Of a stretch of DNA of 64,000 bases, positions 2,052-64,000 are shown one piece after another (position 1 is the stretch's first letter; each line of letters starts with the position of its first letter). A model generated the notes under the pieces. The model was given only the letters and a program-made list of their open reading frames with translations. It was not told where the DNA came from and ran no database searches. Position numbers and translations under genes: made by a program. This stretch comes from Anolis carolinensis (taxonomy: Eukaryota), in the NCBI RefSeq assembly GCF_035594765.1, contig NC_085842.1, forward strand, positions 260,881,749 to 260,945,748, read 5' to 3'.

Positions 2052-4017
2052 AAAAACAAATGGTCAGAGTTTCTGTTGGGTGTAAATCAAAGCACAACCT
2101 TAGTGCTGGGTGGAGATGGAAATGAGATTTTGGGAATATCTCAGAAATGATTGTGCCATGAAGTCCTTTGCCCACCTTTACATGGCCTATAGATATATAA
2201 AGACATAACAGAATAGCACTTTTTGTCATCTAATATTGCCCCAGGGAACTGGAAATCATAACTGAGTTAAGCACATGTATCAATCATAGTGAGAGACTTC
2301 ATTCATTGCCGAAACATATTCAAATGCAGGGAGGGGAGGACTTATTTCTTTTCTGCAAAAGGATTGCACAAGAGTGACTACACTCTGTGCCTGGAAGGGC
2401 GAGGCACCCCTTTTCTCTTTTTTAATAAATACCTGGAATTTGAGGCAGATCATGGTCCAAATAGTGGTATGTGTAGGAAAAGGAGAAACCTAGCCAGCAG
2501 GGTAATATGGCAGCCTTACTTGTAACAGACACATATACGAGAATCTATGGCAGTCTCAGATGCCATTGCTACCCTGACATCTACTCTGGAAACAATTATT
2601 GGAGGTACTACAGTTCCAAGAATCCCACAAAGAGCAATGTGATTGTGGGACCATCAACATTTCAGAATGCTAAAGGCAAATTTCTTGAAGTTAAGAACTG
2701 TCAAGGTTAGAAGAACACATTTTCTTGGCTCTGCCAATTTATAATGCCGGCATAATGGTACAGAGGAAAATATTTTCTGGCATAGCATTCAAGTAATTAG
2801 CTAATAAAACCATTATAGGACCCAACAGTAACCACTTGGTATACTTCATACCAGGCCCTGAAGTTCAGTCTTTCATTTATGTGTATGTATACCAGTATTC
2901 AGTTTGGTTTTTAGCTGTAATTATTTAAAATGGACTCCATCATTCTTCTCTCTGTGCTTTTTCCTTTTATTGGAAACCAACTCATGGCTTTTCATTTGGG
3001 CTATAGCATTTAATTTTGCATTCAACCAATTACTGTGGGTATGGATTTTGCTTTGTTTAAGGATCACAACACTCAAGCAGTTATTTTCACAAATATATGG
3101 TGCCTTTATTACAGCCAGCAGTCTCAAACGAACTATGCTTCTTTCTAGCAATTTCAGTCCATTTTTCGCCTCTCTTCTGCACCACTAGCAATTTTCTCTG
3201 TGAGCTGTGTATAGTTTGTGAAACCTTGAGAAGCTGAGAAAATGCTCTGCTGGCTGGTTCATTCCCTCAGGAAACACCACTTGAATGTCAAAAGAACCAC
3301 AAAGTAGAAATTATTCTTACTTTCATAAAACCAAAGATTTAAACACAGTGTGTGGGATGTATTACTGCTTCGCTGCAAGGCAACATAAAAAGGAAAGCTT
3401 TATCTTTCTGCCTGAAACCTGACAACCTCTGGGAGTGTGCGTTCAACAACCTAAAAATCAAAACATTTTCATAGCACAAACAGCACATGGAAAGTCAGTT
3501 CTTGGACAAAGTGAGAAAAGATAAAAAGATATAACTTTGAGACATTCACTGTGTAGAGCCAAATGCTGATAAAAACAATATTAGCCTAAATTGTGTCTAT
3601 CATTTTCTAGCCTGAAGAATATCATGCCTGGATGTTTTAAATATATGGAGGCTACAGTGAGGCTCTTGCATTTTGGACATTGTATGAAATTGGTAAACTT
3701 AATCAAGGCAGATAGACTCAGTAAAGGGATCTGTTGTCTTAAGTCTGCAAGACCTGAGCAGAGCAGTTAATAAACAGATCTCTTGAAGGTATGTCATTTA
3801 TAGGGATTGTCATAAATTGAACTTGATTTGATAGCTTTATCATAACTAGAACCAAATCTGATCCTGCGTTGAGAAGTTGGACACAAAGGTATGTGGATGC
3901 ACATCTGATCCCAACCCTTCCTATATTCAGAGACCTCATTTGCATATATTATATGTGTTTATACCCAGAGGTTTGTTATATATCTTTATACAGATTGATT
4001 TATATATATTCTGTACC

Positions 4018-4217
4018 TAGTGGCAGCTGGTGGCTTCAATATGCGTAGGGCTATGAATCTGCTTCGGGATTTAGCCACAACTTTACACAAGCTATCTAAA
4101 GTTCTGATCCCATTCTGAGAATTGGGTTTGGCATCCTGAATGAGACTTTTAAAATTCAGGTCAAGGCCCAGGGCATATTATGGCTCTAATTGATATTGAA
4201 GCCATGAACCACCACTG
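4018..4217. mobile_element. Old ~200 bp hAT-like MITE
   Basis: Imperfect TIRs TAGTGGCAGCTGGTGGCTTCAATAT / ATATTGAAGCCATGAACCACCACTG; TSD is degenerate. Confidence 0.5.
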
Positions 4218-7200
4218 GCTGTTTGCTGGATCCAGATTTCAACAGTATGAGCATTTTGGCAACTGTGTGTTTAGCATGAAAACATCATCAACAGTCTGAA
4301 GCCATCTTGTTGTGATCCTGGATTGCTGAGTTTTGCTTTGAACTTCTGAAAATATTCAATTAGTGGGAGACAGTGTTGCAAGCTATAGGCTAGGGTTGTT
4401 GCCTTTTAATACAGTCCTGTCTTGGCAATGTCATATTTACTTGTAGAAAATTCTGCTCTAACATCTTCCTTGCATCTGGAATAAAATTTACATTTCCCTT
4501 TTACATTCCTGCTACAAAAACATACAAACAGTTGTTTTGCTTTGTACTGACTGTGCTCACTTTGCCTATGCATTTATTGGTTAAAATATTTATATTAAAC
4601 CCCACTAGGTAAAGATCTCAGGACAGAATCAATATGACAATAAGAACTAACTATAAACATTTTGATGCTTAGTGGACAAGCTTTTTTGCAATTTAGGGCT
4701 TCTTCAATTAACCTTCAATTACATACTTGGCTCTCAGGGAGTAAACACAGTGAGTTCTTTGGGACTCACTTCTGAATTGTTAGTAAAGGTTTGTGCTGCC
4801 AATGCATATGCCACCATCCTCTGTTACAAATATCATCATGTCCTACACAGGAACCAATATGCACATTTGTAAGGACACCTGAATCCTGGGTAAACCCGTA
4901 AATACTAGAAATATGGCAGTATCAAACAAACTTGAGTTTTTTTTAAAAAAAGGGGGGGGGTTGGCAATAACCCAGTAGGTGAGATCCATTTTCTGTGAAA
5001 ACCTGTGACATATTATTACTGTAACTAATTCCTTAGTAAATAGTCTTTTCCATAGCAGCTAAACTGAATTTGGTACTAAAACATATAAACACCATGCAGT
5101 GTGGTACTCATAAAAGCAATATGGAGAAATAATATAAGGTGGGGACATGCCTAATCAACCTTTTTTTAAAAAAAAAAAATGGCAACAATTTATATTAATT
5201 TTGGCAACAATTTGTATTAATCTTGGCGCAATATGCAAAACTTTTGAGTGTGTGTCTTTAGTGAAACACTTGAGATTAGCACAGGGCTACAGACAAAACA
5301 TGTCAAATCTTCATTCGTTTTGCTTAGTCAAGGAAACAGACTAGCAAGTGTCTGGAATGTGGGGATAATTAGTGGAAGCGGAAAGGTAAATCTTGTGTTC
5401 TGCATTTAATGGAACATGAGCAGAATTTATACAAAACCAGATGTGATGTAAAACATTCATGACTGGATCTTTTAACTTTGTTTTTTAGTTTTATAACCAA
5501 AGCAAATATGGGAGACTCTGACTTGATGCAAACTGTGGCACTGAGGAGAGGGCGTTCCATCTTCTTACTGGAACAGAAGGCAAATAAAAATGTACCTGAA
5601 TTGTGTCCATCTGTTTCTTGGTGTGGGGTTTAAAACAGCAACTTTCAGAGAGGGAGCATTATTTAGATTAAGGGCATAGCATATGGAGAAAGGGTTCAAA
5701 ATTGGGAAGTTTCAAAATGGATTGCTCAGCTTGAATCTGGCATTCCTGGCAGAACAAAAGTGGCTGTAGATCTTGTCACTTGGTAGATGCCAGTCTTGTT
5801 AGTTAGTTTCTGAATGGTTGAAACAAAATCCCAGTTAACTGGGAGAGATGATTCTGGGAGAGGTGAAAAAGCAAACAGTACTGAGAGACATAAAAGAAAG
5901 AGATAAAACTACAAAGGAATCTTAAGAGACCTAATTAACTTAGTCTTCAAAGTATTCTTGCGATTTAAGATCAAATGAGAAAATGTCACACATTGACATT
6001 TTTAATGGAGTAGGCAAGTGAGGAATGACTGAATTCATCTGGAAAACAAATATTTGATTCGATTCAATAGAGTGGTGATCATTTACTTTTTTATATACCA
6101 ATGGATTCTATTTTCACAAAGGTTGCTCAATTTACTATGTTAGCCACAACATCCAAATGCTATGAAAGATAATCTCCTCCTCTACTGCTATCCTCCTTTC
6201 CTTGTGTATACTATTTTATTTAAACTGCATGCCTCAGGGTAGGGAACTGTCAGGTTGACAATTTGTAATCAGCTCTGGGAGATATTTTAGCTGAAGGGTA
6301 GGGTATACAAACTATAAACATACAAATAAGACGTACTAGGACAGAACTATCATATCAAGGGAGACACTGAATCTTTTGCTATCAAAGAACAGGAGCAGCA
6401 AAGATGAACACATTTACACATAACTTTCCCAGCCTGACAGGAAAAAATATTTTGGTACAGAGCAATGGTGATTGTGGCTTCCATGTTAGTTGAAGTTTTA
6501 GTCCGAACTTTATGAGAATAACTCAAGGTGTTGAAATCCATACTCAATATAACATTTAGAATTGCATCACTGCCTCTATGATACAGACCCTCTAGCTATT
6601 TGTTTCGGTTTGACCTATTCTGGGAGCCACTGATTTGCATCAAAGATATACATTGATATAGTTCACATTGGCCCAAGTAGATCATATTACCTACACAGAC
6701 AAGATCACAAGCAGATGTCCTTCATATCAACTTGTGCTTTGTCCTTTAAGTAGAGGTACCTGGATTTGAACCTGAGATGTGTTCTTCCAATGAATGTTTG
6801 TCATCTGCAATGCCAGATGTAGGACAAATGAGGCCATGCTTTGTGGCACACTGCCATAGACTATTAACTCTATCATTATGTCTGGAAACACTCCGAAACA
6901 GAATACCTTCAAATTTATAATTACACTACATGAGCAAAATCCATCATAAAAAATAATAATTTTTTTTGCAGGAAGATGCCCCCTCACGACCATGGTGTGC
7001 TGCATACTGGAGATTAGAGCTCCTAGGGGAATCTGGATGGGGACTTATCCCACTATTCCATAATGCTCACATCACTTATCAACTTCCATAGCTGCAGAAA
7101 CCTACAAATAAATTGAAACAAAGAAAGCTGCTTTGAAGTTGGGAATATTATTTTTGGTTAGAGAGAAGTAATACAAATTACTTTTATTTGATAATCTTTT

Positions 7201-8008
7201 TTAAAATTAAAAACTGCAAAGCATAAACCATATAAAAAGAAAACTTTTCTTGATAAACTTACAAAAATCCAGGCAGATTTTTAAAAATAAAAAATGTAAG
7301 ATTTTGCTTCTTTAAAAAATGTATGACTTTCAAGAGGTTTCATTTATAAACTTAAGAAATATTTTCTCTGATGCAGGAGTGACCTTTCTAACTTTCGTGT
7401 TCACAAAGAACCTTTTTCACAGCATGTGATTCATATAAAGCTGGGAAATTTTGCATAATGCAAGTGACACTTTTTGATCCATTTTCCTCTTCTTTCTCTT
7501 TCTTATGAACAGCATATGTTACATCTGTGCCTGTTTCCATAGAAACAGTCAATTTTGGACTTTGAAAGAGGGAGTTGGGGGGACGCTGAAGAGTTGAGTA
7601 GCTTGGGAACAAGTGCACAGGTAATGGAGTTGAAATAGTTCTTCATTTTAATACTTGTGAAATATAAAACAAAATTAAACATATGAATCATATGAGACAC
7701 TCATCAGAGACTAGAATCTCTGATTAGCTATGGATCCCAGTGTGAATTTGTTACTAATGGTACCTTGAAATATTTCTGTTTCTTTTAATGCTTCTGTCCA
7801 CCCATTCCTCTATCAGTAAATAAAATTCTCAGAATACAGAAATATGCTTGCTCTGCTTATTTAAGCAAAGCATATAAAGGGACTAATGTGCATTAAGAAT
7901 GAAGTAAAGCCCAGCTTTGTTTCATTGAGAATGTTTGTGATTTTTGTATCATCTTTAAAATGGCAAAGATGGATTGTATAAGCTCAGCTTGGAGATCAAA
8001 CAGGAATG

Positions 8009-8176
8009 GAATCATAGAATCATAGAATAGTAGAGTTGGAAGAGACCTCATGGGCCATCCAGTCCAACCCCCTGCCAAGAAGCAGGAAATCACATTCATA
8101 GCACCCCCGACAGATGGCCATCCAGCCTCTGTTTAAAAGCCTCCAAAGAAGGAGCCTCCACCACAGTCCGGGGGGC
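8009..8176 (-). mobile_element. CR1 LINE 3' end
   Basis: Reverse-strand (ATTCTATG)n tail (gaatcatagaatcatagaat) plus CR1 3' UTR; similar to 28317-28466. Confidence 0.9.
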
Positions 8177-9562
8177 TTTTAAAAGGGGGAGGTTATGTAT
8201 TCAATGAAGGCCAAAGAACTGAATTGAAACACTGTGACCCCTTTGTAGGATGGTGGAAGGTTCCCAGTGTTTAGTGGAAGCAATGTTTCTTAGCAGAGTG
8301 AATGACAAAGAAAAACAACTTTAGTGAGTCAGTTCCAAAAGGAAAACAATGGTATAAGAAGAAGAGCCCCAATGGCTTGGCAGCTAAAACTACTCATTTC
8401 CTTTTTCATTATGATAGTGAATATCTACCTTGTACGTTCTAAGGAAAAGCTTTTTCTTTCTCTCATTAAAATAGGAATAACTTTAATACATAATTGGAAG
8501 TGTTTTAGGATAAGTAGAGAAAAAATAGGAGTTGCATGGGAGCATGACCTTTCAGCCTTCACATTTTGGCATGAAACCACTTGTTCAAGTAGCAATTAGT
8601 CTTTAAATAAAATATGACGATAGATTTTTCCCCTACACATACTTCTAGTCAAATGTTCCACAATAAAAATTCTAAAGATTCTCAGCATTCCAGGCTGACT
8701 ATCTAGCCCTGGTTGCAAAGAAACACTAATGTAATAATAAAGCATTTATAGCTTTTATTTTGGAGAGAGGAGGAAGAAAATAGAGCAGAAGAGCAGCAAA
8801 TACATACATTGTTGTTGTTATATTAATATCCAAACTTCTTTTTTTCCATATTGTGACTCAAGGTAGCTTACAATAGAATTTTCTAAAAAAAATTAATTTC
8901 ACCAAATTCAAAGGTTAAAAAATGATTGAAGCGTCAAAATTTAAAACCAGTTAAAATACAAGCCATTAAAAACACATAGAAAACAGTAAGAGAAATGCCA
9001 ATCAAAGAAAATAAATAGTATCTAGGGATGCAATATTTTGGCAATTCTCAAAGCAATAAATAACTAATTTTAGCAGTTTCCTTCCCACTGCAAGAACACA
9101 CTTGAAAACTGCAGTTTTTGAAGACTATTTACAGTTTGAAACCTATTATGTGCAAATGTGAAAATCTTTAATGCAAAAAATACAAAACAAAACAGGAATC
9201 TATGACCAGGAAACAGCCTCTGTTCCAAAATGAAATTTGGCCACAGTAAGGGTTGTTTTCTGCATGAAAAACATGCACACATTTTACACAGAATATGTCC
9301 CAAAACGAAAAAATCTCATAGGTCCTTATTTCACTTTATCAAGATTTCTCAGCATACAAAAAAAACAAGACATTTTCAATCATTTTCCAACTATTTTTGA
9401 ATATTCTTTCCATCCTTAATTGTACTGCACAAATGTTTGCACTGCTTTCAATACTTATTGAAACCTATTGAGAAAATTGTTGGGTGGGATTTTCCTGAAT
9501 ATCAACAACTTCATTTGTGACACCAGATTTCACACCAAAGTGTGCCTTTAAAAAGTTACTAA

Positions 9563-9891
9563 GGACCTCATCACATTAATACTGGGATTCGCCATGCATT
9601 GTGGCAAATTTGGCGTGGGGTGTGGGGAAGCCATCGATCCATGTCCTGCATTGACTGGCTTCCCTGTCACCCCATCCCACGGAGAGAAGCATCCACCACT
9701 CGGCTTCCCCCCATTGTTGCCTATGCAACACAGGAAGCTTCCTGTGTTGCCACTACAGCATTTTACAATGCTCTTCATTTGCCATGGAGCCCTGCTGGAA
9801 ATAGATCTATGTTGTGGGATGGGAGCAGGCAGGCTCCGTTCCAGAAGCGAAGTGCCGTACAAAAGGCAATTTTGCCCAAATGATGAGGTCG
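9563..9891 (+). mobile_element. ~330 bp TIR element (probable PIF/Harbinger MITE), family B copy 1
   Basis: TIRs GGACCTCATCA / TGATGAGGTCG, flanked by TAA/TCA; central 26-bp palindrome; related copies at 37842, 41686 and 51962. Confidence 0.7.
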
Positions 9892-11879
9892 TCAATATTA
9901 AGGTGAACCAAATTTGGATTAGAAGCCAACTTTATAATTCTTTCATATAGAATAATTCCTTTAGATTCCACTGAAGATTGAAATGTAGCTCCAATAATGC
10001 ATTGGCATGGGGAAATGATGAATTTCTCATCACACTGTGAATATAAAGGTAGGTTGCTTCTATCTTTTTTAAAAAGGAAAAAACTACAATAATGAAGTGC
10101 AGGAGGAGGAGATAATATAAATGGAGTGCCAGCCTAAGACATTCTCACATTCCCACCCACCTTACAAATGCTAAAACTTATTGCTGAATCACTCAGACAA
10201 CAAATCTTGCTTCCATGGTGCAAGACAGAGCTGGCTTTGCTGCTCCACTAGTCAATATGATTTTGAATTAGAAAAGCTTCAAGTCAAACAGGTCGGTCAG
10301 AACCAGTCACAGCATCCTCCTCACACAAAAATCTGACTTCACCCTGCCTTTAGTCATGTACTATTTCCAGCTCATCAGTGTGGCAAACCATTATTATGTG
10401 TAGAATGAAATGCAAGTGATTCAAGCAGTATTACTCATTTATTTTTTTTACAGTGTCAGATGTCAGCACCAAGAACACATAGAAAGAAGTGCAGCTTCTA
10501 TTGGCTTTATATGTACACTGTGGAAAGACAGTTTCATTTGGCAATGAAGTCAGATCTTTAGTCTTCACCATTGCAAACATATCTCCTATACATACAGTTA
10601 TAAATATTCTCAACAAAAGTCACACTTTCTAGCTGAAAGGGGATGTCTGCTTTCACCTGATGTGGTCTCACAGAAATTCAGTAAAGTACCTAAGAACATG
10701 GAGGAAAAACAACTAATATTTCTGTTACCAAACAACCCACTTACCTCCAGAAAACAAAAGTCAGTTGTTTTCTTGTAAGCACAGTAGATTTACATGTAAG
10801 TGCATTTGCACAAGAAACTTGACTAAGAAATGTTCACAAATCATGGCTGTGTAAGTCCAGTAGATTTACATGACTTGAACATTAGTGCTTTTGCACAAGC
10901 AACTTGACTTAGAGATGTGCATGAATCATTGGTGTGTAGCCGAGTGGGAGGCAGAGAAGAATCATCCTTGGAAAAATCCATAGAGGATTGGTTTTCTGTT
11001 GCTAATTTACAGCCTCGCGCTGCACCTGTCACTTTTACAAATCAATGGGAGTGCCTAGCCTTTAATAACACAGGGTCACTAATAAAGGTTGCAAGTGAGG
11101 GCCATGCAGGCGAGACCTTTCGGGATGTTAGGAAAAGAACCATAGTGACGCACATTAACACCCACACGCTCTTTTATGTCACTTCCAATTTACTTTATCT
11201 TAAATTGTCAGCTAGAAGAACTCTCTCCCATATTAATAACTCAAGGTTTGTATCCAAGCCAGGAAAAATAAAGCCTGCTGCTCTGGAAGGCTTGCTCAGA
11301 AAAAAAACCAATTGGGAAAAATATGCCTCAGTCAGAGTGGAGAATGAGAAGTGAAGTGTTTTTTTTAGAGTTTCCAATGAGTAAAACAGAGAGCAGTATT
11401 GGTGCTTTGTCTTTTGTTAAAGCAATCAACCATGTAATACAGAGACTTGGGGTCAGTACTCATGGCAGTTAAATACAAATAAGGGCTGGCTCATAGAAGT
11501 TTTTCTAGGGGTAGTTTGTCTTCTTAACCTGAAGCATATTATCTACACTACAATTATAGCAGCTTGATTCCACTTCATTTCTCATCCATTCAACTAGACC
11601 TCCCAATGAAAGAAATTCCACGAATTGGGACCAGACATTAAGAAAGTTATCTCTCATGCCCTCACCATCCAAACCAGGGATGGTAGTGGGATAGAGAGGA
11701 TGCATTCCCTTGCAGATCTTAGAGCAAAGCCAGGCTCATTTAGGGCGACACAGTTTTTCAAATAGTTTGGGTCTATCATGGACAGAGTGTTAAAGGTAAA
11801 GTCTAGAACTTTGAATTATGTCTGGATCAGCAACCAATGGAGTTTTCAGGAAGCAGTTTATATGCTTGGATTTTAAATA

Positions 11880-23539: not shown

Positions 23540-24229
23540 TTGGACCTTTCTGGTGTTGACCTGGGTGAAGATGAGACTTTTAATCGGAAGGAATTTGTTA
23601 CTAGAGATAGAAGCAAGAAAGAGGGAGTGAGAAGGCCTCGAAGATTAGCTCACAAGTTGGATGGCTAACTTTCCCATGGGAAGTTTTTGTGGGTCCTGTA
23701 CTCCTTATTTTCACAGGCTCAGGATTTCTTAAAAGTGCCCCTCACTGTATTCTTGTTGCGGTGTCAACTTTGCCTTTCCTCGGAAGAGGTTCCAGTTTCC
23801 AGTTCCTTGCCCGTGTCAAATTCCCAGTTCCAGGTGAGCCGTGCCAAGCCGCGACTCCCGAGTAGAACTTGCCTTGCTACCATGTCTTCTTTGTTCCTGA
23901 ACCGAGTTTGACTCTGTTTTGTTTACCTTCCTTCCTTGATCCTGCTATTGGACTTTTCAAGTGGATTTGCAACGATTTGTTCCTGCTATTGTTTCATGGA
24001 CAGACTTTGATTTCTGAAAAGGAAGCTATCGAGCTTCACTTGTGGATTACAATTTGGACATTGCTGAACTCTTCCTGGGTTGCTATTGACTATATATTAA
24101 GGACTATTTCTTACTCTGACTTTCCACCTTAAATGTGCATAGCTATATATATTCTGCTTCAATAAACGGCTTGTGTTATATTGGCTCCGGTCTGGTTTCT
24201 GAGTGCTCGCGCTGCCTTGAGGTGCAACA
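23540..24229 (+). mobile_element. LTR D, probably 5'-truncated; Ty3/Gypsy-like
   Basis: Ends ..gctgccttgaggtgcaaCA; AATAAA at 24161; U5 (ttggctccggtctggtt..gtgctc) resembles LTRs A-C; remnant ORF ..FNRKEF..RRPRRLAHKLDG*; no clean TSD or PBS. Confidence 0.75.
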
Positions 24230-29748: not shown

Positions 29749-30229
29749 ATTTCTGCAAAACAGAAATACAACAAGCAATCATTATAGAATTGAATCACGC
29801 ACCACCAAAAGTTAGAACTAACACATGGTAATCAAAACAGCATTAAAGCAAAAGATTGCTTAAAAGTAGGGTGCTTTAGTTATGAATTTTTCTCACAGTA
29901 CTTTGAGGATAAAATCCATTGACTCTGAAGTGCCATGTTAAAGTAGATCTTAATAAGATATTCAGCACCACCACTATCCTGCTTTTTTGGGATCAGTTTT
30001 AATTGATGTGATCTTATGATGTGGATAGCAAATCTTAGTACATGAACAAATATCAGCAAAGAATAAATGTTAATAATATATACATGCAGTCTTGTGATTG
30101 ATAGCATGCTCTCTACACTTCTGCCTCTTCCATTATTTATTAATTTAGGATACAGTCTTTGATTGGATGTTTCAAATGTGTAGTCTTTGAGAGTTTTACT
30201 CATTGCCCTTAAAAAGGTGATAGTGTGAA

Positions 30230-31472
30230 CACATAAAAGGCATCCAATGATTTCTATCAGTTGTGGACCAGACACTAATACCCTGTTTTTAAGGAAGAGA
30301 CTGTACAAGGAAATAAAGTCTAGACAATGGCAAAATATTACTTCTGTACAATCTGGTTTGCAGACTGGTTTTGGAAACAGTTTAGCCTTGATCATCATTT
30401 ATCAAGAGATGGTTAAAGGGATGATGACCTTGCTAATTCTGCTCAATATCTTTAAGTTAATTGACCATGATATATTCCTAGACTGTTTCTGTGTGATGAA
30501 TATGAAGGTCAATTACAAATAGTACCAATAGGATGTCTTGTCAATTTGTCTGTGTTGTGTCAGGACAGCATTTTGCTTCTCAGTACTCTTCAACAGCGAT
30601 TTATAGCCACTGGGGGCAGATGATTAATAAGATGGTTGGCTCAAAAAGGTGTAGTTAGCATTTGAACATTCCATAACAAAAAATGAGAAGGACCACATAA
30701 TGTCCATGATGAATATGGAAGCATAATCCACTGAACTGAGTAGTTTCTCAGCTGAATACAATCAGGATTACTGGTGTATAAGTGGAGGATAGGTTTGGGG
30801 GTCAAAATTATGAGTTGTGCTTTGATCATGAATAAGTCAAAGATGAAAGTTAGGAGTATGTAACAAAATATTTTTTCTCCTCTTTTAAAAATGTATAAAG
30901 AAGGGCACACATTAGGAAGAGGTAATGAGAAGTAGAGGATCTGTTTAACTGAGGGATTGCAATGAGGGGTTCAATTGTATCACTGATCTTAAAATGTCTT
31001 CATCTGTGATTGAGGTCCAGGTTATTTCAAGGATTGTATCTCTTTCTATGACCTGTCAGATATCTATGATAATTTAGATGCCTTATTTCCCTCAAACTCA
31101 AGCATGTTTGGTGGGAACAAGAGAGAGGGACTTTTTGGTGGCTGTTCCCAGACTTTGGAATTCCCTCCCAAAGGAGACCAGGATGGCCCATCCCTGTTTG
31201 ACTTCTGCAAACAGAAAGACATTCTGTGTGAGCAGGCATTTGCAGGAAGGTGAGGAGCATGCTGCTGGGGAGGTTGTGGTGGAACTTGGGGGTTAGGGTG
31301 GTGGGTTTTAAATGTAATTTTAATTGTATTTATTCTATTTGAATTGAATGTTTGTTTTTATGTTTATGCATGAATATTTAATTGTTTTATAATGTTTGTA
31401 TTTGTTTTGTTTAAAATTGTTATCAGAGTGTGTTGTTGTTAATGCCTTGAGTCTCTATGAGAAGAAAGGTGT
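30230..31472 (+). mobile_element. Highly decayed L2 LINE (RT to 3' end)
   Basis: QSGLQTGFG..LLILLNIFKLIDHDIFLD (RT); LVGTRERDFLVAVPRLWNSLPKE (C-terminus); L2-type tail running into (TAA)n. Confidence 0.75.
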
Positions 31473-53433: not shown

Positions 53434-53733
53434 ACCTAGGAAATTGTTAAGAGAGTTTTCAATTTAGCGAAGTGGCTGTGGAAAAATCTCAGATGGGAAT
53501 AAAAAATTGAGCATTTGGTGAAGTGCTGGGTTTCACAACATTTAAATCTTGGCCGGTTTTGTTTCTGGAACCTATGCAACATAAATATTAAGTCAACTTG
53601 TTTCTGACTGAGAGTCAGAAAGGGATATATATTGGAGGGGGGGGGGGGGGAGAGAGGATCCAGACTGTTTAAACCACTTACATCCATTATATAATGCTTA
53701 ATAATTTGCATTACTGGAAAGTCTTATTGCTTC

Positions 53734-54640
53734 TGTGATGCCTCATGGGTTTTGTAGTCCTGTGCCTAGTGTCACCGTGACAGATGAGGATGAAAACATG
53801 GGGTTTTCACAGCCAGAGCCAGAGTTTTTCCAGATGCCTGAGGTTCTTGTCCAAGAACCAATTAAAACTGACCTTGATCAACGCTCACCTCCCTTCGCTA
53901 GAAAGCAATCCTTCTCGGCAGATAGGGGAGTGAGAGAGAAAATTCGGAGGAGTGCCCGAATTGCTGCCAAGCAAGAGACTGATTAGCCATGTTTCCCCTG
54001 GGAAAATCCAGTGAGTCTCACACCTGCAAGTTGGGTTTCGTTCCCTGTTCTCTAGGGAAAGAGAACGCTGGATGCCCGTTTGGCGGGAAATGAGACCCAG
54101 ATAAAAGTATCGGGCTCTGTTGATTCTTTGCGGAGACAACAGCTCAGCTTCGGGAGTGAATTCCATGTTTCCAGCCTAGTGTGGACTTCGCTAAGTCCAC
54201 AATCCAGTTTCCTTGCCTCGCCTGCTCAAGTCTCCATGAATTGCCTTGCTTTGTCCTTAGCCACGGATTTTGTTCTTAGAATCAAGTTTTTAGACTACCT
54301 TGCCTCGTTTTGAACCACGGACCTTGTTTCCTAGATTCAAGCCTTGTTCCCAGCTTCCTTGTGGATTTAACCTTGTGCCTTGAAAGACTTTGGACAATTC
54401 CCCTCACTATTGCCTTGCAATAGTGAGTGTTTCGGTATTGGATTTTATCTTTGAACCCTAATATCATTTATTGGACAAACTATTCCTGGACTATTTTAGA
54501 CCTCATTTGAAGGGTCTGTTTCTGGACTATATTCTCTACTTGCTTTTATCCTTCTTATATATTTCCTTAATAAAGATATTAGATAGTTTTATTGGCCTCC
54601 GTTTCTGGTTCTTGGTGCTCCGCTGCCTTGGTGTGTGACA
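53734..54640 (+). mobile_element. Solo LTR A (907 bp), Ty3/Gypsy-like
   Basis: TG...CA termini, 5-bp TSD GCTTC, AATAAA at 54569. Confidence 0.93.
53735..53986 (+). CDS. LTR-encoded 83-codon frame (probable Pol C-terminal extension or microprotein) with DEDENMGF and RRSARI motifs
   Basis: Intact frame starting at LTR nt 2; motifs shared with frames in three other divergent LTRs. Confidence 0.55.
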   Translation: MMPHGFCSPVPSVTVTDEDENMGFSQPEPEFFQMPEVLVQEPIKTDLDQRSPPFARKQSFSADRGVREKIRRSARIAAKQETD

Positions 54641-54767
54641 GCTTCAGCCATTGGCAAAGGCTTTATAAATCTAAGCCTGAAAATGAAATAAAAATCTATA
54701 AGGTCTTCATTGTTTTTAGTAGTTGACAGGACACAATCCACAATCTGCTCACATTAAATGCTTCTGA

Positions 54768-54915
54768 GGCCCTTTCTACACGGACATATAAAATACAGAT
54801 AATCTGTTTTGAACTGGATTATATGGAAGTGTAGGCTCATATAATCCAGTTCAAGGCAGATACTGTGGATTATCTGATTTGATAATCTGGATTATATGGC
54901 AGTGTAGAAGAGCCC
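54768..54915. mobile_element. PIF/Harbinger MITE
   Basis: TIRs GGCCCTTTCTACAC / GTGTAGAAGAGCCC, 3-bp TSD TGA; internal ctggattata/tataatccag repeats. Confidence 0.82.
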
Positions 54916-56155
54916 TGAATGGGAGTAGCAGAAGAGCAGGACAATTTTACCACTCACTTCACACTCAAAAAATATCCTGCAGGAAAATGGATCAATGGAT
55001 TTTGCTATGTTCATGTAAATCAGCATTTAAAGTTACATGATTTTGCCTTCTGGTCAAGTTCAGGTGATAGATATGATGAAGACATGCCCTAAATTGAAAC
55101 AAACTGGGCAGGAGTTAGTTAGACATTCTAATCAATGGAGATTGGCTGACTAAACAAGAATTCAGTTTCATAGAACCAAATGCTAGCCAATTTTTTTCTC
55201 TGTTCTTGTCAGGGATTGGTCAATAGACAAAATAAGGAAGTGGTGAGAATATCAGCATCATTTACTTGGTCTCTTTTATTATTTGGGCTAGTCAGAGATT
55301 TCTAGTTAATCTTTGTTTGGTATAATTCTCATCTATTCTTCAACAGCTGCCTGAGAATTTGCCGAAATGGTTAAAATATATTTCTAAGAGGGAATTCTAT
55401 TAGACTGGTTTAAAATGCACACAGCAAAATGTTTGTGTTTCTCAGTTCTAAGTTCATTGGAAAGACTAAAATAATTGCATGGGCTTGTAATATGAGTTTG
55501 GATCTAGTATTTTATCTGATCAGACCTTTTTATGACATAGCAAAATATGAATAACAAACTTAATGCATTTGCCAAAATGATTCAACAACATAGATATGCT
55601 TAATGCTTTTTCCTGTCCTTTCTGTTTTGTTCATTTGTTGATTTTGGAAAGAAGCAGTTTTATGGATATGAATGGAACTCATTAAAGTCTTCAGTAACAT
55701 ATTAAAACAAATGCTTTGCTTCTCTGGAGCATTGTAGCTCCTTTTTAAGTGACATACTACTAATATTTATGTCTGTGATTATTCTTAGCATTTCTTTGGG
55801 AATATCTTTCATTGGTGCCTGTTTGCCTTCAGTTTTCTTTGGCATCATTAGAGTTTCAGCACTTGAACAGTACTGCAAATACTCGTTTGCTACTTGTTGA
55901 TAGCATAATTTACATATTATCATCATGATAGCATTGCGCCAACAAGTAAGTACTTATTATGAAAGATACGTTTTGTAGATTTTTGCAATGAAACATAAAT
56001 CATGACATTACAATCCATTGGGGAGACACATTATCCTGTGATTTTGAAGTAGGTTCAGGTGCATAAATGTTGAGGACAATTCAGTCATTTATATAAATTT
56101 AAAGATTTAAATCTATCTTCACCACCCCCTGGTTCTCAGCTTTAAAAGATTATAA

Positions 56156-56322
56156 GTTAATACTTAGATAGGAGACCAGCAATGATTACCAGGTGATATA
56201 GGCTATGTTTCAGAGGAGGGAAGTGACAGAACCATATCTGAATTTTCCTTGTTTAAAAACACCTCTTGAAATTCACCAGGTCTCCACAAGTCAACAGGTA
56301 AGTTGAAGGCACATATACACAC
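56156..56322 (+). mobile_element. 5'-truncated 5S-derived SINE
   Basis: gttaatacttagataggagacc..taccaggtgatataggc (5S 3' half) plus tail ttgaaggcacatatacac. Confidence 0.75.
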
Positions 56323-58089
56323 AAGGAAATTTATGCTTACAACATAAAAGAAAAGACACAAAAGAAAAATGGATGGGTGGGTTTCTTTACTGAGTTAATG
56401 TAATGGCCGTACTTTTTCACTCTCTGTTACAGCAGAATAAAATGGCAGCTGTTTGTGTGTCAGTTTGTGGAGGGAGGGCTGGTGGAGCTGGCTAAGTGGT
56501 GGCCTTTTCTCCCACTGCTCCAGCCTGATAAAATGATTTGCTGCCAAGTAACAGTAGATAGAAAAAGGAGCACTTAAATACTTTCTTGGTAAGACTGCTG
56601 TAACTAATTCCTATGAATCTCTAAGAATTGGTATGTAATAGTTGGAGCCCCCTTGTATGTGTTTCTTAATGCTCCTGTGCTACTGAAAGAATCACTGGTA
56701 GAAATTATTAGCACAGTAAAAGAAGTATTCCTAGGCTTTCTACATAAAGCCTGTTCTAAGCTCTTTACACTTGAGCCATGAGCCAGCTCTAAGCAGTATA
56801 GTAATTTGGGACTTCCAAAGTCTCGTAGTATCTAATTCCTAATAAGTAGCTTACATTAGTTATTGCATCTACTACTGACATGATACTCCTCCAAATGTCT
56901 TCGGTTCCATAAAGATGTTATCCTATCCTTTTCGACTGGTGTGCAGACCACTTCCATAAGTGGTCCAAAAAGTAATTTTCCTAAACCTTTTCCATATATG
57001 AATGAATAAAGACACTATCGTATTTGACTCATAAATATTGATGCTAATGGTATTCTTAACTTGTTTCAAATTTAACTTATGCCAACTTCAAAATTATGCC
57101 AACATGTACTCTTGAGACTTATCTTAACTGTATCCAAAGCAGGTAAGTATTCCCTTTGCTTCTTAATCAAAACTTGAGGGAGTTGAATTCCATGCTTTGA
57201 TATGCAGATACCAAGACAGACAGTCATAGGCAAAAATAATCTTTTTTTGTTTTTTGAGTTCCACAACTATGCATTCCTGGGTCATAATTATCACTTCTTC
57301 CTTATATGCCCTCTTGTAGACATATCCACACATCTGATCGGAAATCAGGGGGAAAGGAATTATGTCTGTTATTCAGCAGGACTCTGGAGCAGATGAAAAG
57401 ACCTCATGTGCATGGCACTGAATATAAATATTGAATGATTTAATGGTTTTACTTTATGGCACTGTAAAATTCTATTGGTGAGCTCGGCACTCATACACTC
57501 AGACTTTTAAAATGTTTATTGCAGGCATTTTACTGATCGTAGCCAACAAGTTTTGTTTTGCACAGAATCCTTTCTGGTTTTTGGTCTTGCTAGCTACATT
57601 GATTAATAAATAGCAATTACTGTTCACCACTATTATGCTAGAAGGATTTGTTGGAAACCAGTTTGCTCAATTCATGAGGCTTAGGGACTTTTCTTCACAG
57701 ACACACAATACAGCTTGGAACCAGCATGATAAAAACTGGTTCCAGGCAGCATTGAGGCCACACTGCCTCGGCAGTGGGACATCAACCCAACAGCCCAGCT
57801 GTAATGAAGTCGATATGGCCAGACTGGGCATGGGCTCAGTTTCTATCCTACCTGCAACACTGATTTTCCCCCACAAAAGAAAGCAACAGCACTTTCCACT
57901 GGTAACAGCCTCCTTTTCCTGGTTCAAAGCCCTATGACTGGCAAAGGAACCTGGGAAAAGCTATTGCTCTTCTCAGTCGTCCCAGTTTCGTTTGACAGTT
58001 ATGTGGCTCAGAAACAGGATAAAGAGGCTTCTGCCATGTGGTAGGTGCTTTTTCTTTCTTCTCTGGGGCATGACGGGCATGAATGGACT

Positions 58090-58350
58090 TTTTTTTCCTG
58101 TCAGGAGCAACTTGAGTCACTTCTGGTGTGAGAGAATTGGCCATCTGCAAGGACGTTGTCCTGGGGACGCCCGGATGTTTTGATGTTTTTACCATTTTTG
58201 TGGGAGGTTTCTCTCATATCCCCACATGGAGCTGGAGCTGATAAAGGGTCCACGCTCTCCCCGGGTGGGATTCGAACCTGGCAACCTTCAGGTCAGCAAC
58301 CCAACCTTCAAGTCACAAGGCTTTAACCCACTACTCCATCAAGGGCTCCT
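58090..58350 (-). mobile_element. SINE of the same family as 45207
   Basis: 12-bp TSD CATGAATGGACT (58078-58089 and 58351-58362); B-box ggttcgaatccc on the minus strand; A-tail. Confidence 0.9.
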
Positions 58351-60369
58351 CATGAATGGACTGCCATCCTACCTACTTAAGCTCCCTGAGCACCGAAATA
58401 CAGTATGGCTGTCCCCATTGCCCCAACATGGAGGAAGATTCACATCCTGGAGCAGGATGTAGACCTTGCCTGGAGTTTTTATTTTAATCCAGGGTGAAGT
58501 CACATTAAGCAGCTTACCCTAACTGAATGTTGGACAGATGCACCAGGCTAATGCAATACCCAGACTGCATTATTTGACAGTGTAGATGCAGCCTTAATGA
58601 TAATACTCTGAAACTGTACTGAAAGCAAAAATTTACTTACGAAGACTTGCAGCTCATTAGACAGCATCCTATTTAGGCATTATGCCTGTGTAAGAAAGTA
58701 CCCAGTTCACCATCTTCTCACCCAGAATAAAGCTGTGTGTACCATGTGGCCTGGCTTGTACTTTCTGAACCAATCTGAGTAGTTCCATTTCCACTTTGTA
58801 TAGTTTCTATATTTTGACTGATAAGAGGAGATTATCTTATCCTTTACCTCAGGCAGGAAAGTGTCTTTAGTTAGCTAGTTAGCATAGGGAGGGGATTAAA
58901 ATTCCCTCGGCATTGCTCATCATCAGGTTCTCAGATTTCCTCAACATCAGACTGCTGGGAGTTATAGTCCAACAACATATGGATTGCTATATAATTTTGA
59001 TTCATTTTGGAATAATCAATCAGCACTTGACTGCATGTATCCCTGTGTAACTTTTGTATTACATTGTCCATCAATAGAAAAAAGCTATTACTTTACAATC
59101 ACTGGGAGATCAATGGTAATGTAGGTGACTACCTGCTTTAAACCTTTAGAATTTGTAAAAGCGATGGCTGATTTGGAACTCATGTAGCCCATGGCAGGTC
59201 TCTACGTGTAAGTACCAGTCAGCATTCTTTCCTTTGGCTTGGAGCACTTTTCAGTGAGTGCTAAAGAATTGCTTTAAGAGCTAGGAAAAGCTGTCAGATC
59301 CCCTGTGAGATTAAATGAATACACTTGCTGGAACAGAAGGGAAAGAGAAATCTGCTTGTTCAGGGCAAGCATGCTTAGACTTGCTGCTGTCAGAACAAGA
59401 GTCAGCTAGGTACTGGTGGTAAAGATTTGAAAGCCTGTAATATTTTCCTGCACAGTTAAGTAAAAGAGAAAATAATAGAACGTCTTCCCACTTTCTCTTC
59501 TCTATAATAAATAACATACAGGAAAATGAAAATTTAGAGGTGGATGTCAGAGTAATACTAAACTTAGGGAAAATGGTGGCTGTTCAAATTGGGTGTATGT
59601 TAGAAATTCGCAATCTGCTAGCCCTTTCCGGGACTCTAATTTTGAACAGCAACCCTCTCTCTCTCTCTTTTGACAGATTGCTTTGCTTGTTTTATGTATG
59701 TGCCTACTAGGATGATTGTTTAAGCATGGCATCACATAAAAGGGAGTGAGGAGAAAGAAAGAAAGAATCACAAAACGAGGACAAAGATGTGCCTAAAATG
59801 TGCATATGACAATAGATAGAAAGTTAAAGAGATATAGATATTAAAAATAATTGCATTATATGATAAATGGAAATAGAACTCTCTATGAAGCCTGTGGAAA
59901 ACTGTGTTGTATACAATTTTGAAGCCCCTGTAGGTGCTTTAAAGTGAACTAAAATTCAAAATGGGTCAAAATATCATAAGGTCACTACATCCTATCTGAT
60001 CTTGGAAGCTAAATAGTGTCAGCTCTGATTAGTATTTGAAGAGAGACCAGGATTGAACACCAGGTGCTGTAGGTAATTTTTTAAAGGGGAAGAACTGGCA
60101 AAACCACTGCTGTGTATTCCTTCCCTTAAAAAAATCCCTATGAAATCAATGGGGTCACCATAAGTGACAGGCAACTTGAAGGGACTGTAGTGTCTCAGAG
60201 ACCCCCGAGTCATGACCCCGTCGCCATTATGGATCAGACCGAAGAAGAGATGGGGTTTGTGCCACTTCCACAAGATTCTACTCCTTTCCAGATGTCCCCT
60301 GTTGACAGTTTTAGCCCACAGTTAATTAAAAAGGGCCTTGATTCACAGCCCGGTTCTCCAGAGAGCGCT

Positions 60370-61345
60370 TGTCACGACCCAGACTACAGAGCACCAATAA
60401 CCATACGCAGAGGCCAGATTCTATCTAATATCTTTATTAAGGAAATATATAAAGTTAATAAAAGCAAATGTAAAAGTTAGTCCAGAAGCAGACCTTTCAG
60501 GAAAGGTCAAAATTAGTCCAAAGAAACAATGTCCAATATGAAATATTAAGGTCCAAAGTTGTAATCCAATAACCGAAACACTCACTTTGCCAGGCAAAGT
60601 GAGGGGAGATGACAAGGTCCTTTAGTCCATGAACTTGAGCAAGGCTAGGAATTAACTTGATACTTGAAAACAAGGCTTGAATCGTGGCACAAGGTAACAA
60701 GGAACAAGAACAAGATCCGTGGAATTACTTGGTAAAATCCGTGAAACAAGGCAAGGTTTAGTCCTGAAAGGCGAGGCAAGGTCCGTAGGTAAACAAGGCT
60801 GGGAAACAGGAGCGAAGGCTTGAAAACAAGAACAAGGCTTGATCAGGAACGAGGCTTGGATCGGAGCGCGCTGTCCAGACACAACTCGCTCCGGAGGCTG
60901 ACGAATTGACTCCGCAAAGTTACTCCGCGGGTAAAACACCTATATAGAGTCTAACTTTCCCGCCGAGAGCAGTTCTCTGGGAACCAGAAACGAAAGCTAA
61001 TCTCTGAGACCAGATGTTTGACTCCTTAAAGATTCTCATGGAAAGCAGGCTTAATTGGCTAAATTCTTAGCAATTATTCTAGCACTCCTGCGCGAGGCCG
61101 CTTCCAAACCTCTCTGTTGTTTACAAAACTCATGGCGAGAAAACACAGGAGATGTAGCCTCAGTGTTTGTTTGACATACTTCTGGAACATAACCCTCTTG
61201 CAGGTGCAAGGTTCCCAGATCTGGCTGGGAAGAATCTGTCTGGGAAGAATCCAGTTCTGACTGGGAAGGTAAAAAACCCAAGTTTTCTTCTTCATCAGGC
61301 ATCACAATGTCATGAGCAGGACTACAAGGCCCATGGGTCATCACA
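60370..61345 (-). mobile_element. Solo LTR C (976 bp), antisense inside LTR B
   Basis: TG...CA termini, 5-bp TSD GCGCT (60365-60369 and 61346-61350), minus-strand AATAAA at 60433-60438. Confidence 0.94.
61051..61344 (-). CDS. LTR-encoded 97-codon frame with DEEENLGF and RRSARI motifs
   Basis: Intact frame starting at LTR nt 2; homologous to the frames in LTRs A, B and D. Confidence 0.55.
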   Translation of the reverse strand: MMTHGPCSPAHDIVMPDEEENLGFLPSQSELDSSQTDSSQPDLGTLHLQEGYVPEVCQTNTEATSPVFSRHEFCKQQRGLEAASRRSARIIAKNLAN

Positions 61346-62063
61346 GCGCTCCTTTTGACCGCAGATTGTTTTGGGAAACATCTCGCTCGGAGAAGCAGAA
61401 TCTGAGAAGAAGCGCAAGATTAGCGGAGAGAGCAAGCGTTAATTAAGCCGGTTCCCTTGAGAGTTTCCCGGGAGGATTGCATCTGGCAAGTTGTTGACTT
61501 AGTCCACTTTCCCTCGGGAAAGAGTGTTCAGACACCTGGCTGGAGAGGAGAGTGTAGTCCCGTAAAAGTTCTGGGCGCCAACTGACCTTTGCGGTGTTCA
61601 ACGTGTCAGTTGAGGAATTCACATCGACTCTAGTTCTGCAGTGCGCTACTCTCGAGTAGACCGGCATTGCATCTCGTCTCCCTGCCAAGCCTGGACAGCG
61701 ATTCAGCTTTACCATGACTAACTTTGCCTTGCCTTGTATCCTAGCCTCGGAATTGAACCCTGGAACTCTTGACAGATCTTGCTTTAATCCCCACTCAAAC
61801 AGCCTAAAGGTTTGAGTGTGTTTTGGTTATTGGATTTAAAACTTTGAACTCTAATACTGGATATCTACTTTCACATTACTGGACTATATTTGACCTTTTC
61901 TGAAAGGACTATTGCTGGACTATATACTCTGCTTATTTTTAGTTGTCTCCTTTATTTCCTTAATAAAGATATTAGATAGTTTATTGGCCTCCGTGTCTGG
62001 TTCCCAGTGCTCACACTGCCCTGAGGCGTCACAGGGACATACATACACAAAGTTCATCTAAAT

Positions 62064-62198
62064 CAGTGATTCTCAACTTGGGGTCCCCAGATGTTTTGGG
62101 CCTACAACTCCCAGAAATCCCGGCCAGTTTACCAGCTGTTAGGATTTCTGGGAGTTGAAGACCAAAAACATCTGCAGACTCCAGTTTAAGAACCACTG
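62064..62198. mobile_element. 135-bp palindromic hAT MITE
   Basis: TIRs CAGTGATTCTCAAC / TTTAAGAACCACTG; 8-bp TSD ATCTAAAT / ATCTAGAT; internal caactcccagaaatcc / ggatttctgggagttg. Confidence 0.88.
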
Positions 62199-62320
62199 AT
62201 CTAGATCAACATTATTTGTATTAGAAGTAGCAATCTGATTCTTTAGACAAGGTTTGGTCTATATGTCCCATAGGAATTCAAAACACGTAGAGGACATCAG
62301 ACAATCTACTTTTATCTATA

Positions 62321-62643: not shown

Positions 62644-63626
62644 TATTTACAACAGCTTGGAAAGGTTACTTTTTGGATGACAACTTCCCAAATTCCTCAG
62701 CCACTGTTGTAGACTAAAAAGGATAAGCGGTACCAAAGTTTGATAGTGATTAGCAGCAGCTTCCTAAGATTTCAGATCTCTACCTGGAGATGTTAGGAAC
62801 TCAACCCAGGATATTTTGTATGCTGATTTCATATGCTGCACCATTTGCCCAGAGACAGTATAGCTGTATGAAGGCGTATTTATCTTACATTCTAAACAGC
62901 TTGTGTCGCAACCATCCTGCATAATTGAAGTCTTGAAGATATGGATTAAAAATGAATTAGATCTTTTTCTAGCCAAATTGCTGATTTGCTAAACTGGAGT
63001 CCAAATTAAACTATGAAGTCAGTGGACATTCTTTCTGTGTATGGTATGTGTGTTTAAAGCCAAAGGTCGTGAAAGGTAGGAAGTGGCTGACCAATACTTG
63101 CATGCAACCAGCAACATAATATCATCTTTAATGTTCTGTGGGAGAAGGCATATAAACAAAATGAATTTCATTCTTTCTGAGGAGCTCTGAACAGTATACA
63201 AATGTGCTTTCTTATGCTGAACTGCAATGAGCAAATCTCAGAGTGGGGAAATCGCTAATTGCAAAGCTTGATTGCAACAGCTAATCAGACTCACAGGGAA
63301 AAGAAGTGTGGGGAATTAATTAGGCAAGGACCTTCAGAACAGCAGCAGGAAACCTCCCAGTGACCTTTATTTACAGTCAGTTAAACAGAAGTGTGACTAA
63401 AAATGCCAAGGAGCAAATCACATTATTAATATTGATTGCTTAAAGAAACTGAATAATTTAGAGGTAGTTGGAATAACTATGCCATGGAAGGTAGGGGAAA
63501 ATGTAATGTCTTTTGAACATTAATTTCTCATGCAGCAGTATCCCAAGCTCTGAAACTGAGAATGTTTGCCATTGCGAAACAGAATTAGTTTAATGACCCA
63601 GCATACTTCACTATTCGTGCCACTAA

Positions 63627-63777
63627 GGGCCCTTCCAGACAGGCCCTATATCCCAGGATCTGATCCTAGGTTTTCTGTTTATCCCAGATTATCTAGCAGT
63701 ATGGGTTCTTATAATCCAGTTTAAAGCAGAAAACCTGGGATCAGATCCTGGGATATAGGGCCTGTCTGGAAGGGCCC
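63627..63777. mobile_element. Complete 151-bp PIF/Harbinger MITE
   Basis: ~51-bp TIRs GGGCCCTTCCAGACAGGCCCTATATCCCAGGATCTGATCC.. with one mismatch; TAA TSD on both sides. Confidence 0.93.
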
Positions 63778-64000
63778 TAAGATGTTTCTGGGTTGCAAAA
63801 TGAGATAAACATATGGTGTTCTGCAAAAATATATACTTATTAAATTATATACCACAGTGTTTTTGGAATGCAACTCTTTCAATGAATATTGTATATTCTC
63901 TGCCAGAATTATGGACAATTTAGAATTAATATTTTCAAAATACTGTTTTCCTATACATTATATATAATTACTTACTGTCGATGCAATATAGACAATAAAT

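Follow-up and report, generated by a model that had tools for sequence, protein, structure and literature searches.

Why do solo long terminal repeats (LTRs) contain long open reading frames (ORFs)? The question arises in a 64,000-nucleotide stretch of the Anolis carolinensis genome (RefSeq assembly GCF_035594765.1, contig NC_085842.1, forward-strand positions 260,881,749 to 260,945,748; hereafter the window), in which three divergent LTRs, designated A, B and C, each have an open frame with the pentapeptide RRSAR close to its end. The LTR frames are almost certainly the last 83-97 codons of pol in A. carolinensis chromoviruses, the Ty3/Gypsy elements with a chromodomain integrase. The C-terminal extension that they encode, referred to as the tail, resembles a nucleosome-binding motif of HMGN proteins at its basic end.

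Open frames and shared motifs in LTRs A, B and C

In LTRs A, B and C, frame 2 is open from LTR nucleotide 2, where it starts with GTG, GTA and GTG, respectively, and runs for 83, 92 and 97 codons. In forward frames 1 and 3, a stop comes within 0-9 codons, and shuffles of the same 300 nt give runs this long in 0.5-1.3% of trials per LTR. All three LTRs are flanked by 5-bp target-site duplications (TSDs), and the frame scans agree with the initial annotation, made from the sequence of the window, which had all three frames begin at this nucleotide with a GTN codon.

LTR B is interrupted by LTR C. When LTR C is excised together with one copy of its TSD (981 nt), LTR B is 867 bp long and its frame is restored. 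The evidence from public runs, on the empty-site form of LTR B and on LTR abundance, consists of contigs. An uninterrupted form of LTR B is present in public A. carolinensis contigs, with joints from 60363/60365 to 61345/61347 that skip 981 nt. Relative to the unique flank, the contig word depth is ~500-800x for LTR C and ~30-40x for LTR B. The LTR C family is very abundant in A. carolinensis, and its depth fits the 366-member cluster of protein P0165 described below.

The peptides of A, B and C share colinear motifs: an N-terminal V-M/V-x-H/Q-G.., an acidic ..EEN[LM]GF, SP.F.R, and RRSAR[IL]A ~13 residues ahead of the stop. The peptides of A and C are 36-41% identical (tblastn E 1e-13), and their DNA can be aligned only at nt 1-77 and along the final 230 nt. 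The LTR B peptide is missed by BLAST, yet a tail profile made without B gives it 31 bits, against 10.4 bits for the best of 5000 shuffles. The three motifs proposed at the outset are present, in the proposed order, in all three LTRs. A fourth LTR had been proposed at fragment D; its frame matches just the C-terminal part of the tail profile, and weakly (E 1.6e-4, among six-frame segments of the window), so that the proposal for D holds only in part.

The RRSAR codons are CGG AGG AGT GCC CGA in A, AGA AGA AGC GCA AGA in B and CGC AGG AGT GCT AGA in C. The codons of the GF motif also vary among the three LTRs. These synonymous differences, the absence of which the initial annotation had listed as a possible objection, indicate that the motif is kept as protein and not as a DNA element.

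The frames are the C-terminus of Pol

A profile of the window peptides, run against 1.84 billion representative proteins, finds only four entries: two chimeric gene models (P0001 and P0002), a repeat protein matched by chance and a fragment. The link to pol comes solely from a word-indexed search with the tail of one chimera, which leads to Anolis proteins annotated as Gypsy integrases. In P0005, P0006, P0008, P0009 and P0010, the Pfam domains Integrase_H2C2, rve, SH3_Tf2-1 and Chromo are followed by the tail. P0140 (1223 aa) comprises reverse transcriptase (RVT_1), RNase H, integrase, Chromo and the tail, and P0164 (1211 aa, cluster of 94) and P0165 (1212 aa, cluster of 366) begin in the protease and end in a C-type tail. 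These proteins bear out the suggestion that the LTR frames belong to the Pol/integrase C-terminus of a vertebrate Ty3/Gypsy element that reads through the polypurine tract (PPT) into the 3′ LTR. P0140 and P0155 have the Pfam order that defines chromoviruses, RVT_1, RT_RNaseH, Integrase_H2C2, rve, SH3_Tf2-1 and Chromo. The chromodomain is always followed by ..KPRPR..(F)ERGLEEGDS and then by V-M-T-H-G-P-C-S-P.

Of the 97 residues of the LTR C peptide, 96 are identical in the C-terminus of P0165. The sole difference is I91A, and this variant is the majority letter at 61073/61074 among contigs of the LTR C family. The nearest annotated tail to LTR A is that of P0162, with 70% identity, and the LTR B tail is without a close annotated relative (35%). 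Encoding contigs were sought for the UniRef-only proteins P0002, P0005, P0006 and P0165, and none was found. For comparisons among tails, we use 35 complete annotated tails from independent gene models, obtained by searches and cluster look-ups. The nearest relatives are amphibian, fish and squamate chromoviruses, and the Anolis gag domains are RTL1-8_LDOC/DUF4939 and a PEG10-type capsid.

Full-length elements read from integrase into the 3′ LTR

Continuity at the DNA level is seen in L003, a full-length element of A. carolinensis (GCA_035594765.1) located via P0125, a protein that carries the NCBI label of a calmodulin-lysine N-methyltransferase isoform. Its LTRs (3906-4785 and 9260-10139) are 99.8% identical and flanked by the TSD GCATG, and a gag with RTL/PEG10-type domains lies upstream. 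The PPT GAGGAGGGGGATAG abuts TGTGATG of the 3′ LTR, and the junction is in frame (..TTG GAG GAG GGG GAT AG/T GTG ATG ACT CAT GGG.., where the slash marks the LTR boundary). The open frame spans 7578-9518 and has 646 codons, 85 of them within the 3′ LTR.

The same phase (GAT AG/T GTN) is found in Rhineura floridana (L001; LTR pair 97.9% identical, 87 LTR codons) and in Crotalus adamanteus (L002; LTR pair 96.4% identical, 108 LTR codons), in both of which the upstream pol is split into several frames. In L003, L001 and L002 alike, a single ORF that includes the integrase crosses the PPT and enters the 3′ LTR, and the 5′ LTR holds a copy of the LTR segment; pol is thus open into LTR frame 2, the outcome anticipated by the initial annotation. 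The features expected of chromoviral LTRs, TG..CA ends, a short TSD and a PPT abutting the 3′ LTR, are found in LTRs A, B and C (5-bp TSDs) and L003 taken together.

In a full-length element, the pol ORF thus has no stop ahead of the PPT; it reads across it as ..LEEGDS and continues into the unique 3′ region (U3) of the 3′ LTR, with LTR nucleotide 1 serving as the third base of the Ser codon at the junction. The product is an integrase with a C-terminal tail, predicted to be disordered, of ~110 residues beyond the chromodomain. Because both LTRs of an element are copies of each other, every LTR, including a solo one, carries the tail-coding segment, and the three solo LTRs of the window therefore show the frame. 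The finding explains coding-like frames within solo LTRs of the Anolis genome, and part of U3 in these elements doubles as coding and regulatory sequence.

The segment that follows the 5′ LTR of L003 (L003:4786-4830) is without the usual TGG start of a tRNA primer-binding site. By analogy with Tf1 and Sushi-type elements, an element of this type may be self-priming.

Several host annotations are affected. XP_062825005.1, named 'calmodulin-lysine N-methyltransferase isoform X1' (L003:8001-9518, CM069367.1), is entirely chromoviral integrase and tail; the locus lies inside the range of the methyltransferase gene, and the label is an annotation artefact. Crotalus P0017 ('PEG10') and Rhineura P0014 ('cec-1-like') are likewise chromovirus integrase fragments. 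The tail thereby flags host 'genes' that are mis-annotated and are really chromoviral integrases.

A predicted disordered tail behind a complete chromodomain

In an AlphaFold 2 (AF2) model of chromodomain plus tail, the predicted local distance difference test score is 78-89 for the chromodomain and below 50 for the tail, except where its last 25 residues form a weak helix. The model is consistent with the tail being an intrinsically disordered region that bears short linear motifs. The chromodomain aligns to that of HP1-beta (CBX1, 1ap0; E 1.8e-9), and the Y/W/F positions of its cage hold F/W/F. Judged by this alignment, a complete HP1-type chromodomain is kept, and the tail supplements it rather than replaces it.

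The 35 annotated tails are 85-97 aa long. DE(E/D)EN[LM]GF is present in 31 of them and SP[PVT]F.R in all 35, and nearly all have RRS[AL]RIAA[KR], which lies 13 residues from the C-terminus in 33 of the 35. RRSAR itself is found in A, B and C of the window and in 19 of the annotated tails, and RRSLR in ~13. The tails of Rhineura and Crotalus are also acidic and then basic, and end in other basic sequences without RRSAR.

Among the Anolis subfamilies represented by P0005, P0008, P0009 and P0010, integrase and chromodomain are 91-96% identical and the tails 49-80%. Indels in the tail are in frame only, giving tail lengths of 85, 87, 92 and 97. The fast divergence possibly reflects exchange of LTRs between elements or diversifying selection.

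Putative docking of the tail on the nucleosome

Where an LTR retroelement integrates is usually determined by its integrase, through short C-terminal motifs or domains. HMGN proteins bind nucleosomes via RRSARLSA, and Dsup uses RRSSR likewise (PMC12487698). In the cryo-electron microscopy structure of HMGN2, residues 22-26 (RRSAR) are resolved on the acidic patch of H2A-H2B, which they contact mainly through R23 and R26; AlphaFold 3 models the HMGN2-nucleosome complex poorly (PMC12487698). The tail segments RRSARIAA and RRSARLAE match RRSARLSA at 6-7 of 8 residues, including the full resolved pentapeptide. The sequence and the AF2 model together show what defines an HMGN-like motif, RRSAR with Arg as its second and fifth residues, set within a disordered segment. 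RRSAR has 0 occurrences in 64,100 residues of non-Anolis chromoviral matches. The identity of the pentapeptide, its disordered setting and its absence from the non-Anolis matches therefore favor a contact with the acidic patch.

In the mechanism that we propose, the terminal RRS[AL]RIAA[KR] would act as an arginine anchor of the HMGN/Dsup type on the H2A-H2B acidic patch. The chromodomain would read methyl-lysine on H3, and together with the tail it would let the intasome hold nucleosomes at two points, which would influence the site or the efficiency of integration. A nucleosome-docking function is plausible, given the exact match to the HMGN pentapeptide and its conservation. The explanation as a whole, a pol tail encoded in the LTR that carries a nucleosome-docking motif, is in our judgment evenly balanced between right and wrong. 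The acidic-patch arginine anchor cooperating with the chromodomain is a candidate mechanism to which we give somewhat less than an even chance. We put forward tentatively, and with further reserve, its most specific form, in which an HMGN-mimicking anchor encoded in U3 behind an HP1-type chromodomain lets the integrase grip both the methylated tail of H3 and the acidic patch. If true, a direct acidic-patch motif would be seen here for the first time in a retrotransposon integrase, and the LTR would bear a targeting module that is exchangeable by LTR recombination and evolves together with the promoter.

Several points weigh against nucleosome docking. Binding to the acidic patch is inferred from sequence, and a match of five residues can arise by convergence or by chance. 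RRSLR takes the place of RRSAR in about a third of the annotated tails, and the other basic ends of the Rhineura and Crotalus tails imply that the exact HMGN-like form is lineage-restricted and perhaps inessential. The tail peptides have no match in Pfam, in the ESM Atlas (searched by features) or, beyond the chromodomain, in the PDB. The lower identity of the tails relative to integrase is compatible with weak constraint outside the motifs. Pairwise ratios of nonsynonymous to synonymous substitution rates among A, B and C are 0.32-0.42, values that are unreliable at this divergence, with synonymous sites saturated and the protein-guided alignment biasing the estimate. In addition, a basic C-terminus could just as well act in nuclear import or in binding nucleic acids.

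The last point leads to the alternative that fares best, namely that the tail is a functional integrase extension whose motifs serve another role, such as import into the nucleus, cDNA or RNA binding, or attachment to a different host factor. The motifs are conserved within a disordered tail, and the basic end resembles a nuclear localization signal (NLS) or an AT-hook-type element. The tails of Rhineura, Crotalus and fish elements are acidic and then basic without RRSAR, those of fish having PRGRGRP-like AT-hook cores. We also take the hydrophobic-then-acidic stretch ..IVxPDEEEN.. to resemble a SUMO-interaction motif, a likeness that is possible only. Integrase C-terminal tails of other retroelements tether varied host factors, as in the interaction of murine leukemia virus (MLV) integrase with BET proteins (PMC4027182). 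However, RRSARIAAK does not qualify as a classical NLS, its exact agreement with the HMGN pentapeptide resolved in the structure favors the acidic patch, and no alternative partner motif shows its defining feature, FxGF failing at its first residue (PMC9987994). We consider another role of the motifs unlikely, though a serious contender.

FxGF was raised by the initial annotation, which compared the acidic-xGF motif to the motifs bound by LEDGF and by TFIIS N-terminal domains (TNDs). The first Phe of FxGF is essential for binding to LEDGF and HRP2 (PMC9987994). The position of this Phe is Asn in all 35 tails. Taken together, these tails and the three window peptides show N-[LMF]-G-F or E-M-G-F, so that Phe is never found there. 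A TND-interacting motif, or LEDGF IBM, also has an upstream helix and an acidic linker of 8-16 residues; in the AF2 model, the N-terminal half of the tail is non-helical, with low confidence, and the acidic run of the tail comprises 4-5 residues only. The tail is like the IBM in having an acidic run followed by x-G-F, and unlike it in having Asn for the first Phe; the required upstream helix is not evident in the low-confidence model. We reject the assignment to this motif class on the missing Phe, and the proposed link to LEDGF/TFIIS-N falls with it.

Alternatively, the tail could be a by-product: pol would simply end at the first stop in the LTR, and the peptide would have no role, with DNA-level constraint on U3 (att site, enhancer or promoter elements) or shared descent accounting for the persistence of frame and motifs. 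In accordance with this, the first 8-10 codons overlap the LTR terminus that integrase binds, where DNA-level constraint is expected (PMC3601003), the tail diverges much faster than integrase, and codon-position mismatch counts between A, B and C show no significant skew. However, Iguania, Amphisbaenia and Serpentes all retain open frames of 83-108 codons in one and the same phase, indels are confined to in-frame ones while the RRSAR and GF motifs persist through synonymous codon replacement, the distance from motif to stop is fixed in 33 of 35 tails, and LTR B was recovered by a protein profile despite its unalignable DNA. We therefore regard a roleless peptide as improbable.

A separate small U3 protein, initiated independently of pol at the ATG of TGTG-ATG, is the weakest candidate and very improbable: this ATG is codon 2 in A- and C-type LTRs and the gag gene models P0007 and P0166 start there (M-T-H-G-P-C-S-P..) before splicing into gag, but LTR B has its first ATG at codon 15, P0007 and P0166 splice at different points and look like prediction artefacts, the U3 of the 5′ LTR lies upstream of the transcription start of the element itself, and the frame is always continuous with pol, which makes the microprotein offered by the initial annotation as a second option unneeded. 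P0007 and P0166 are either prediction artefacts or read-through transcripts begun upstream of the element.

Relation of the tail to known systems

The extension of pol into the LTR is an architecture already known from plant CRM and fish V-clade elements, and the new part is the Anolis tail with its motifs. In plant CRM group A, the polyprotein ORF runs through the PPT into the 3′ LTR, where a putative integrase targeting domain is encoded (PMC3059260). The Anolis elements are like CRM group A in that pol reads into the 3′ LTR and a C-terminal module of integrase is LTR-encoded. They differ in that the LTR-encoded CR motif replaces the chromodomain in CRM, whereas Anolis keeps an HP1-type chromodomain and adds a tail predicted to be disordered. 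The motifs of the two show no relation, and the Anolis element has a vertebrate host. In fish V-clade1, pol partially overlaps the LTR, as mentioned in one sentence of a 2024 survey (PMC11117352). The V-clade (Sushi-like) elements are likewise Gypsy elements with a chromodomain integrase, and the Anolis elements may belong with them, judging indirectly by their nearest relatives and gag domains. In contrast to the fish matches, which extend ~20 codons past the PPT, the Anolis overlap comprises 85-97 codons with RRSAR and the other motifs.

The chromoviral integrases of fish (P0055, P0058, P0079, P0084 and others) have an AT-hook-like PRGRGRP(R)RR after the chromodomain. Beyond a G-rich, PPT-like stretch, they continue for another ~20 codons up to a terminal ..SPEY, forming a different, shorter module at the same position.

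With the HMGN core, the tail shares an identical RRSAR in a disordered region; Dsup and yeast Dot5 also have HMGN-like motifs (PMC12487698; PMC13347269). Unlike HMGN, the tail is part of a transposon integrase and not of a chromatin architectural protein, and the similarity is confined to the motif. Short chromatin-docking motifs are also found in viral binders and tethers, including the chromatin-binding sequence of prototype foamy virus (PFV) Gag, LANA of Kaposi's sarcoma-associated herpesvirus, the MLV integrase tail with BET, and human immunodeficiency virus (HIV) integrase with LEDGF (PMC9040877, PMC6282019, PMC4027182). PFV differs in having the anchor on Gag and not on integrase. MLV and HIV are tethered via host adaptor proteins, whereas the Anolis tail is proposed to contact histones directly.

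In the searchable literature, we found neither a chromoviral integrase of a vertebrate in which a long tail encoded by the LTR follows an intact chromodomain nor a retrotransposon integrase with an HMGN-type motif. The tail is an abundant and young natural example in a vertebrate genome, with hundreds of copies and LTR pairs up to 99.8% identical. The identity of its motif to a structurally defined nucleosome anchor makes the docking hypothesis directly testable.

Features of the window

Table 1 Positions of the LTRs, tail frames and motifs in the window
Feature	Position	Strand	Remarks
Solo LTR A	53734-54640	+	907 bp, TG..CA ends; 5-bp TSD GCTTC at 53729-53733 / 54641-54645
Tail ORF A	53735-53986	+	83 codons and TAG, from LTR nt 2
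Acidic motif DEDENMGF, tail A	53783-53806	+	
RRSAR codons, tail A	53945-53959	+	CGG AGG AGT GCC CGA
LTR B, 5′ part	60186-60369	+	TSD GGGAC at 60181-60185 / 62034-62038; codons 1-61 of tail ORF B at 60187-60369
LTR B, 3′ part	61351-62033	+	Codons 62-92 of tail ORF B and TAA at 61351-61446; RRSAR at 61405-61419
Solo LTR C, nested inside LTR B	60370-61345	-	976 bp; TSD GCGCT at 60365-60369 / 61346-61350
Tail ORF C	61051-61344	-	97 codons and stop; acidic motif at 61273-61296; RRSAR at 61078-61092
Fragment D	23540-23668	+	C-terminal tail-like frame ..FNRKEF..RRPRRLAHK..; weak relative, divergent or truncated LTR

The sole ORF of at least 150 aa in the window (172 aa) lies at 29880-30398 on the minus strand and has no Pfam match. 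Two short inverted repeats are present: the arms of the one at 62049-62213 measure 72 nt and are 82% complementary, and those of the one at 63623-63781 measure 58 nt and are 95% complementary. They look like the MITE/SINE-type hairpin repeats that are common in this genome.

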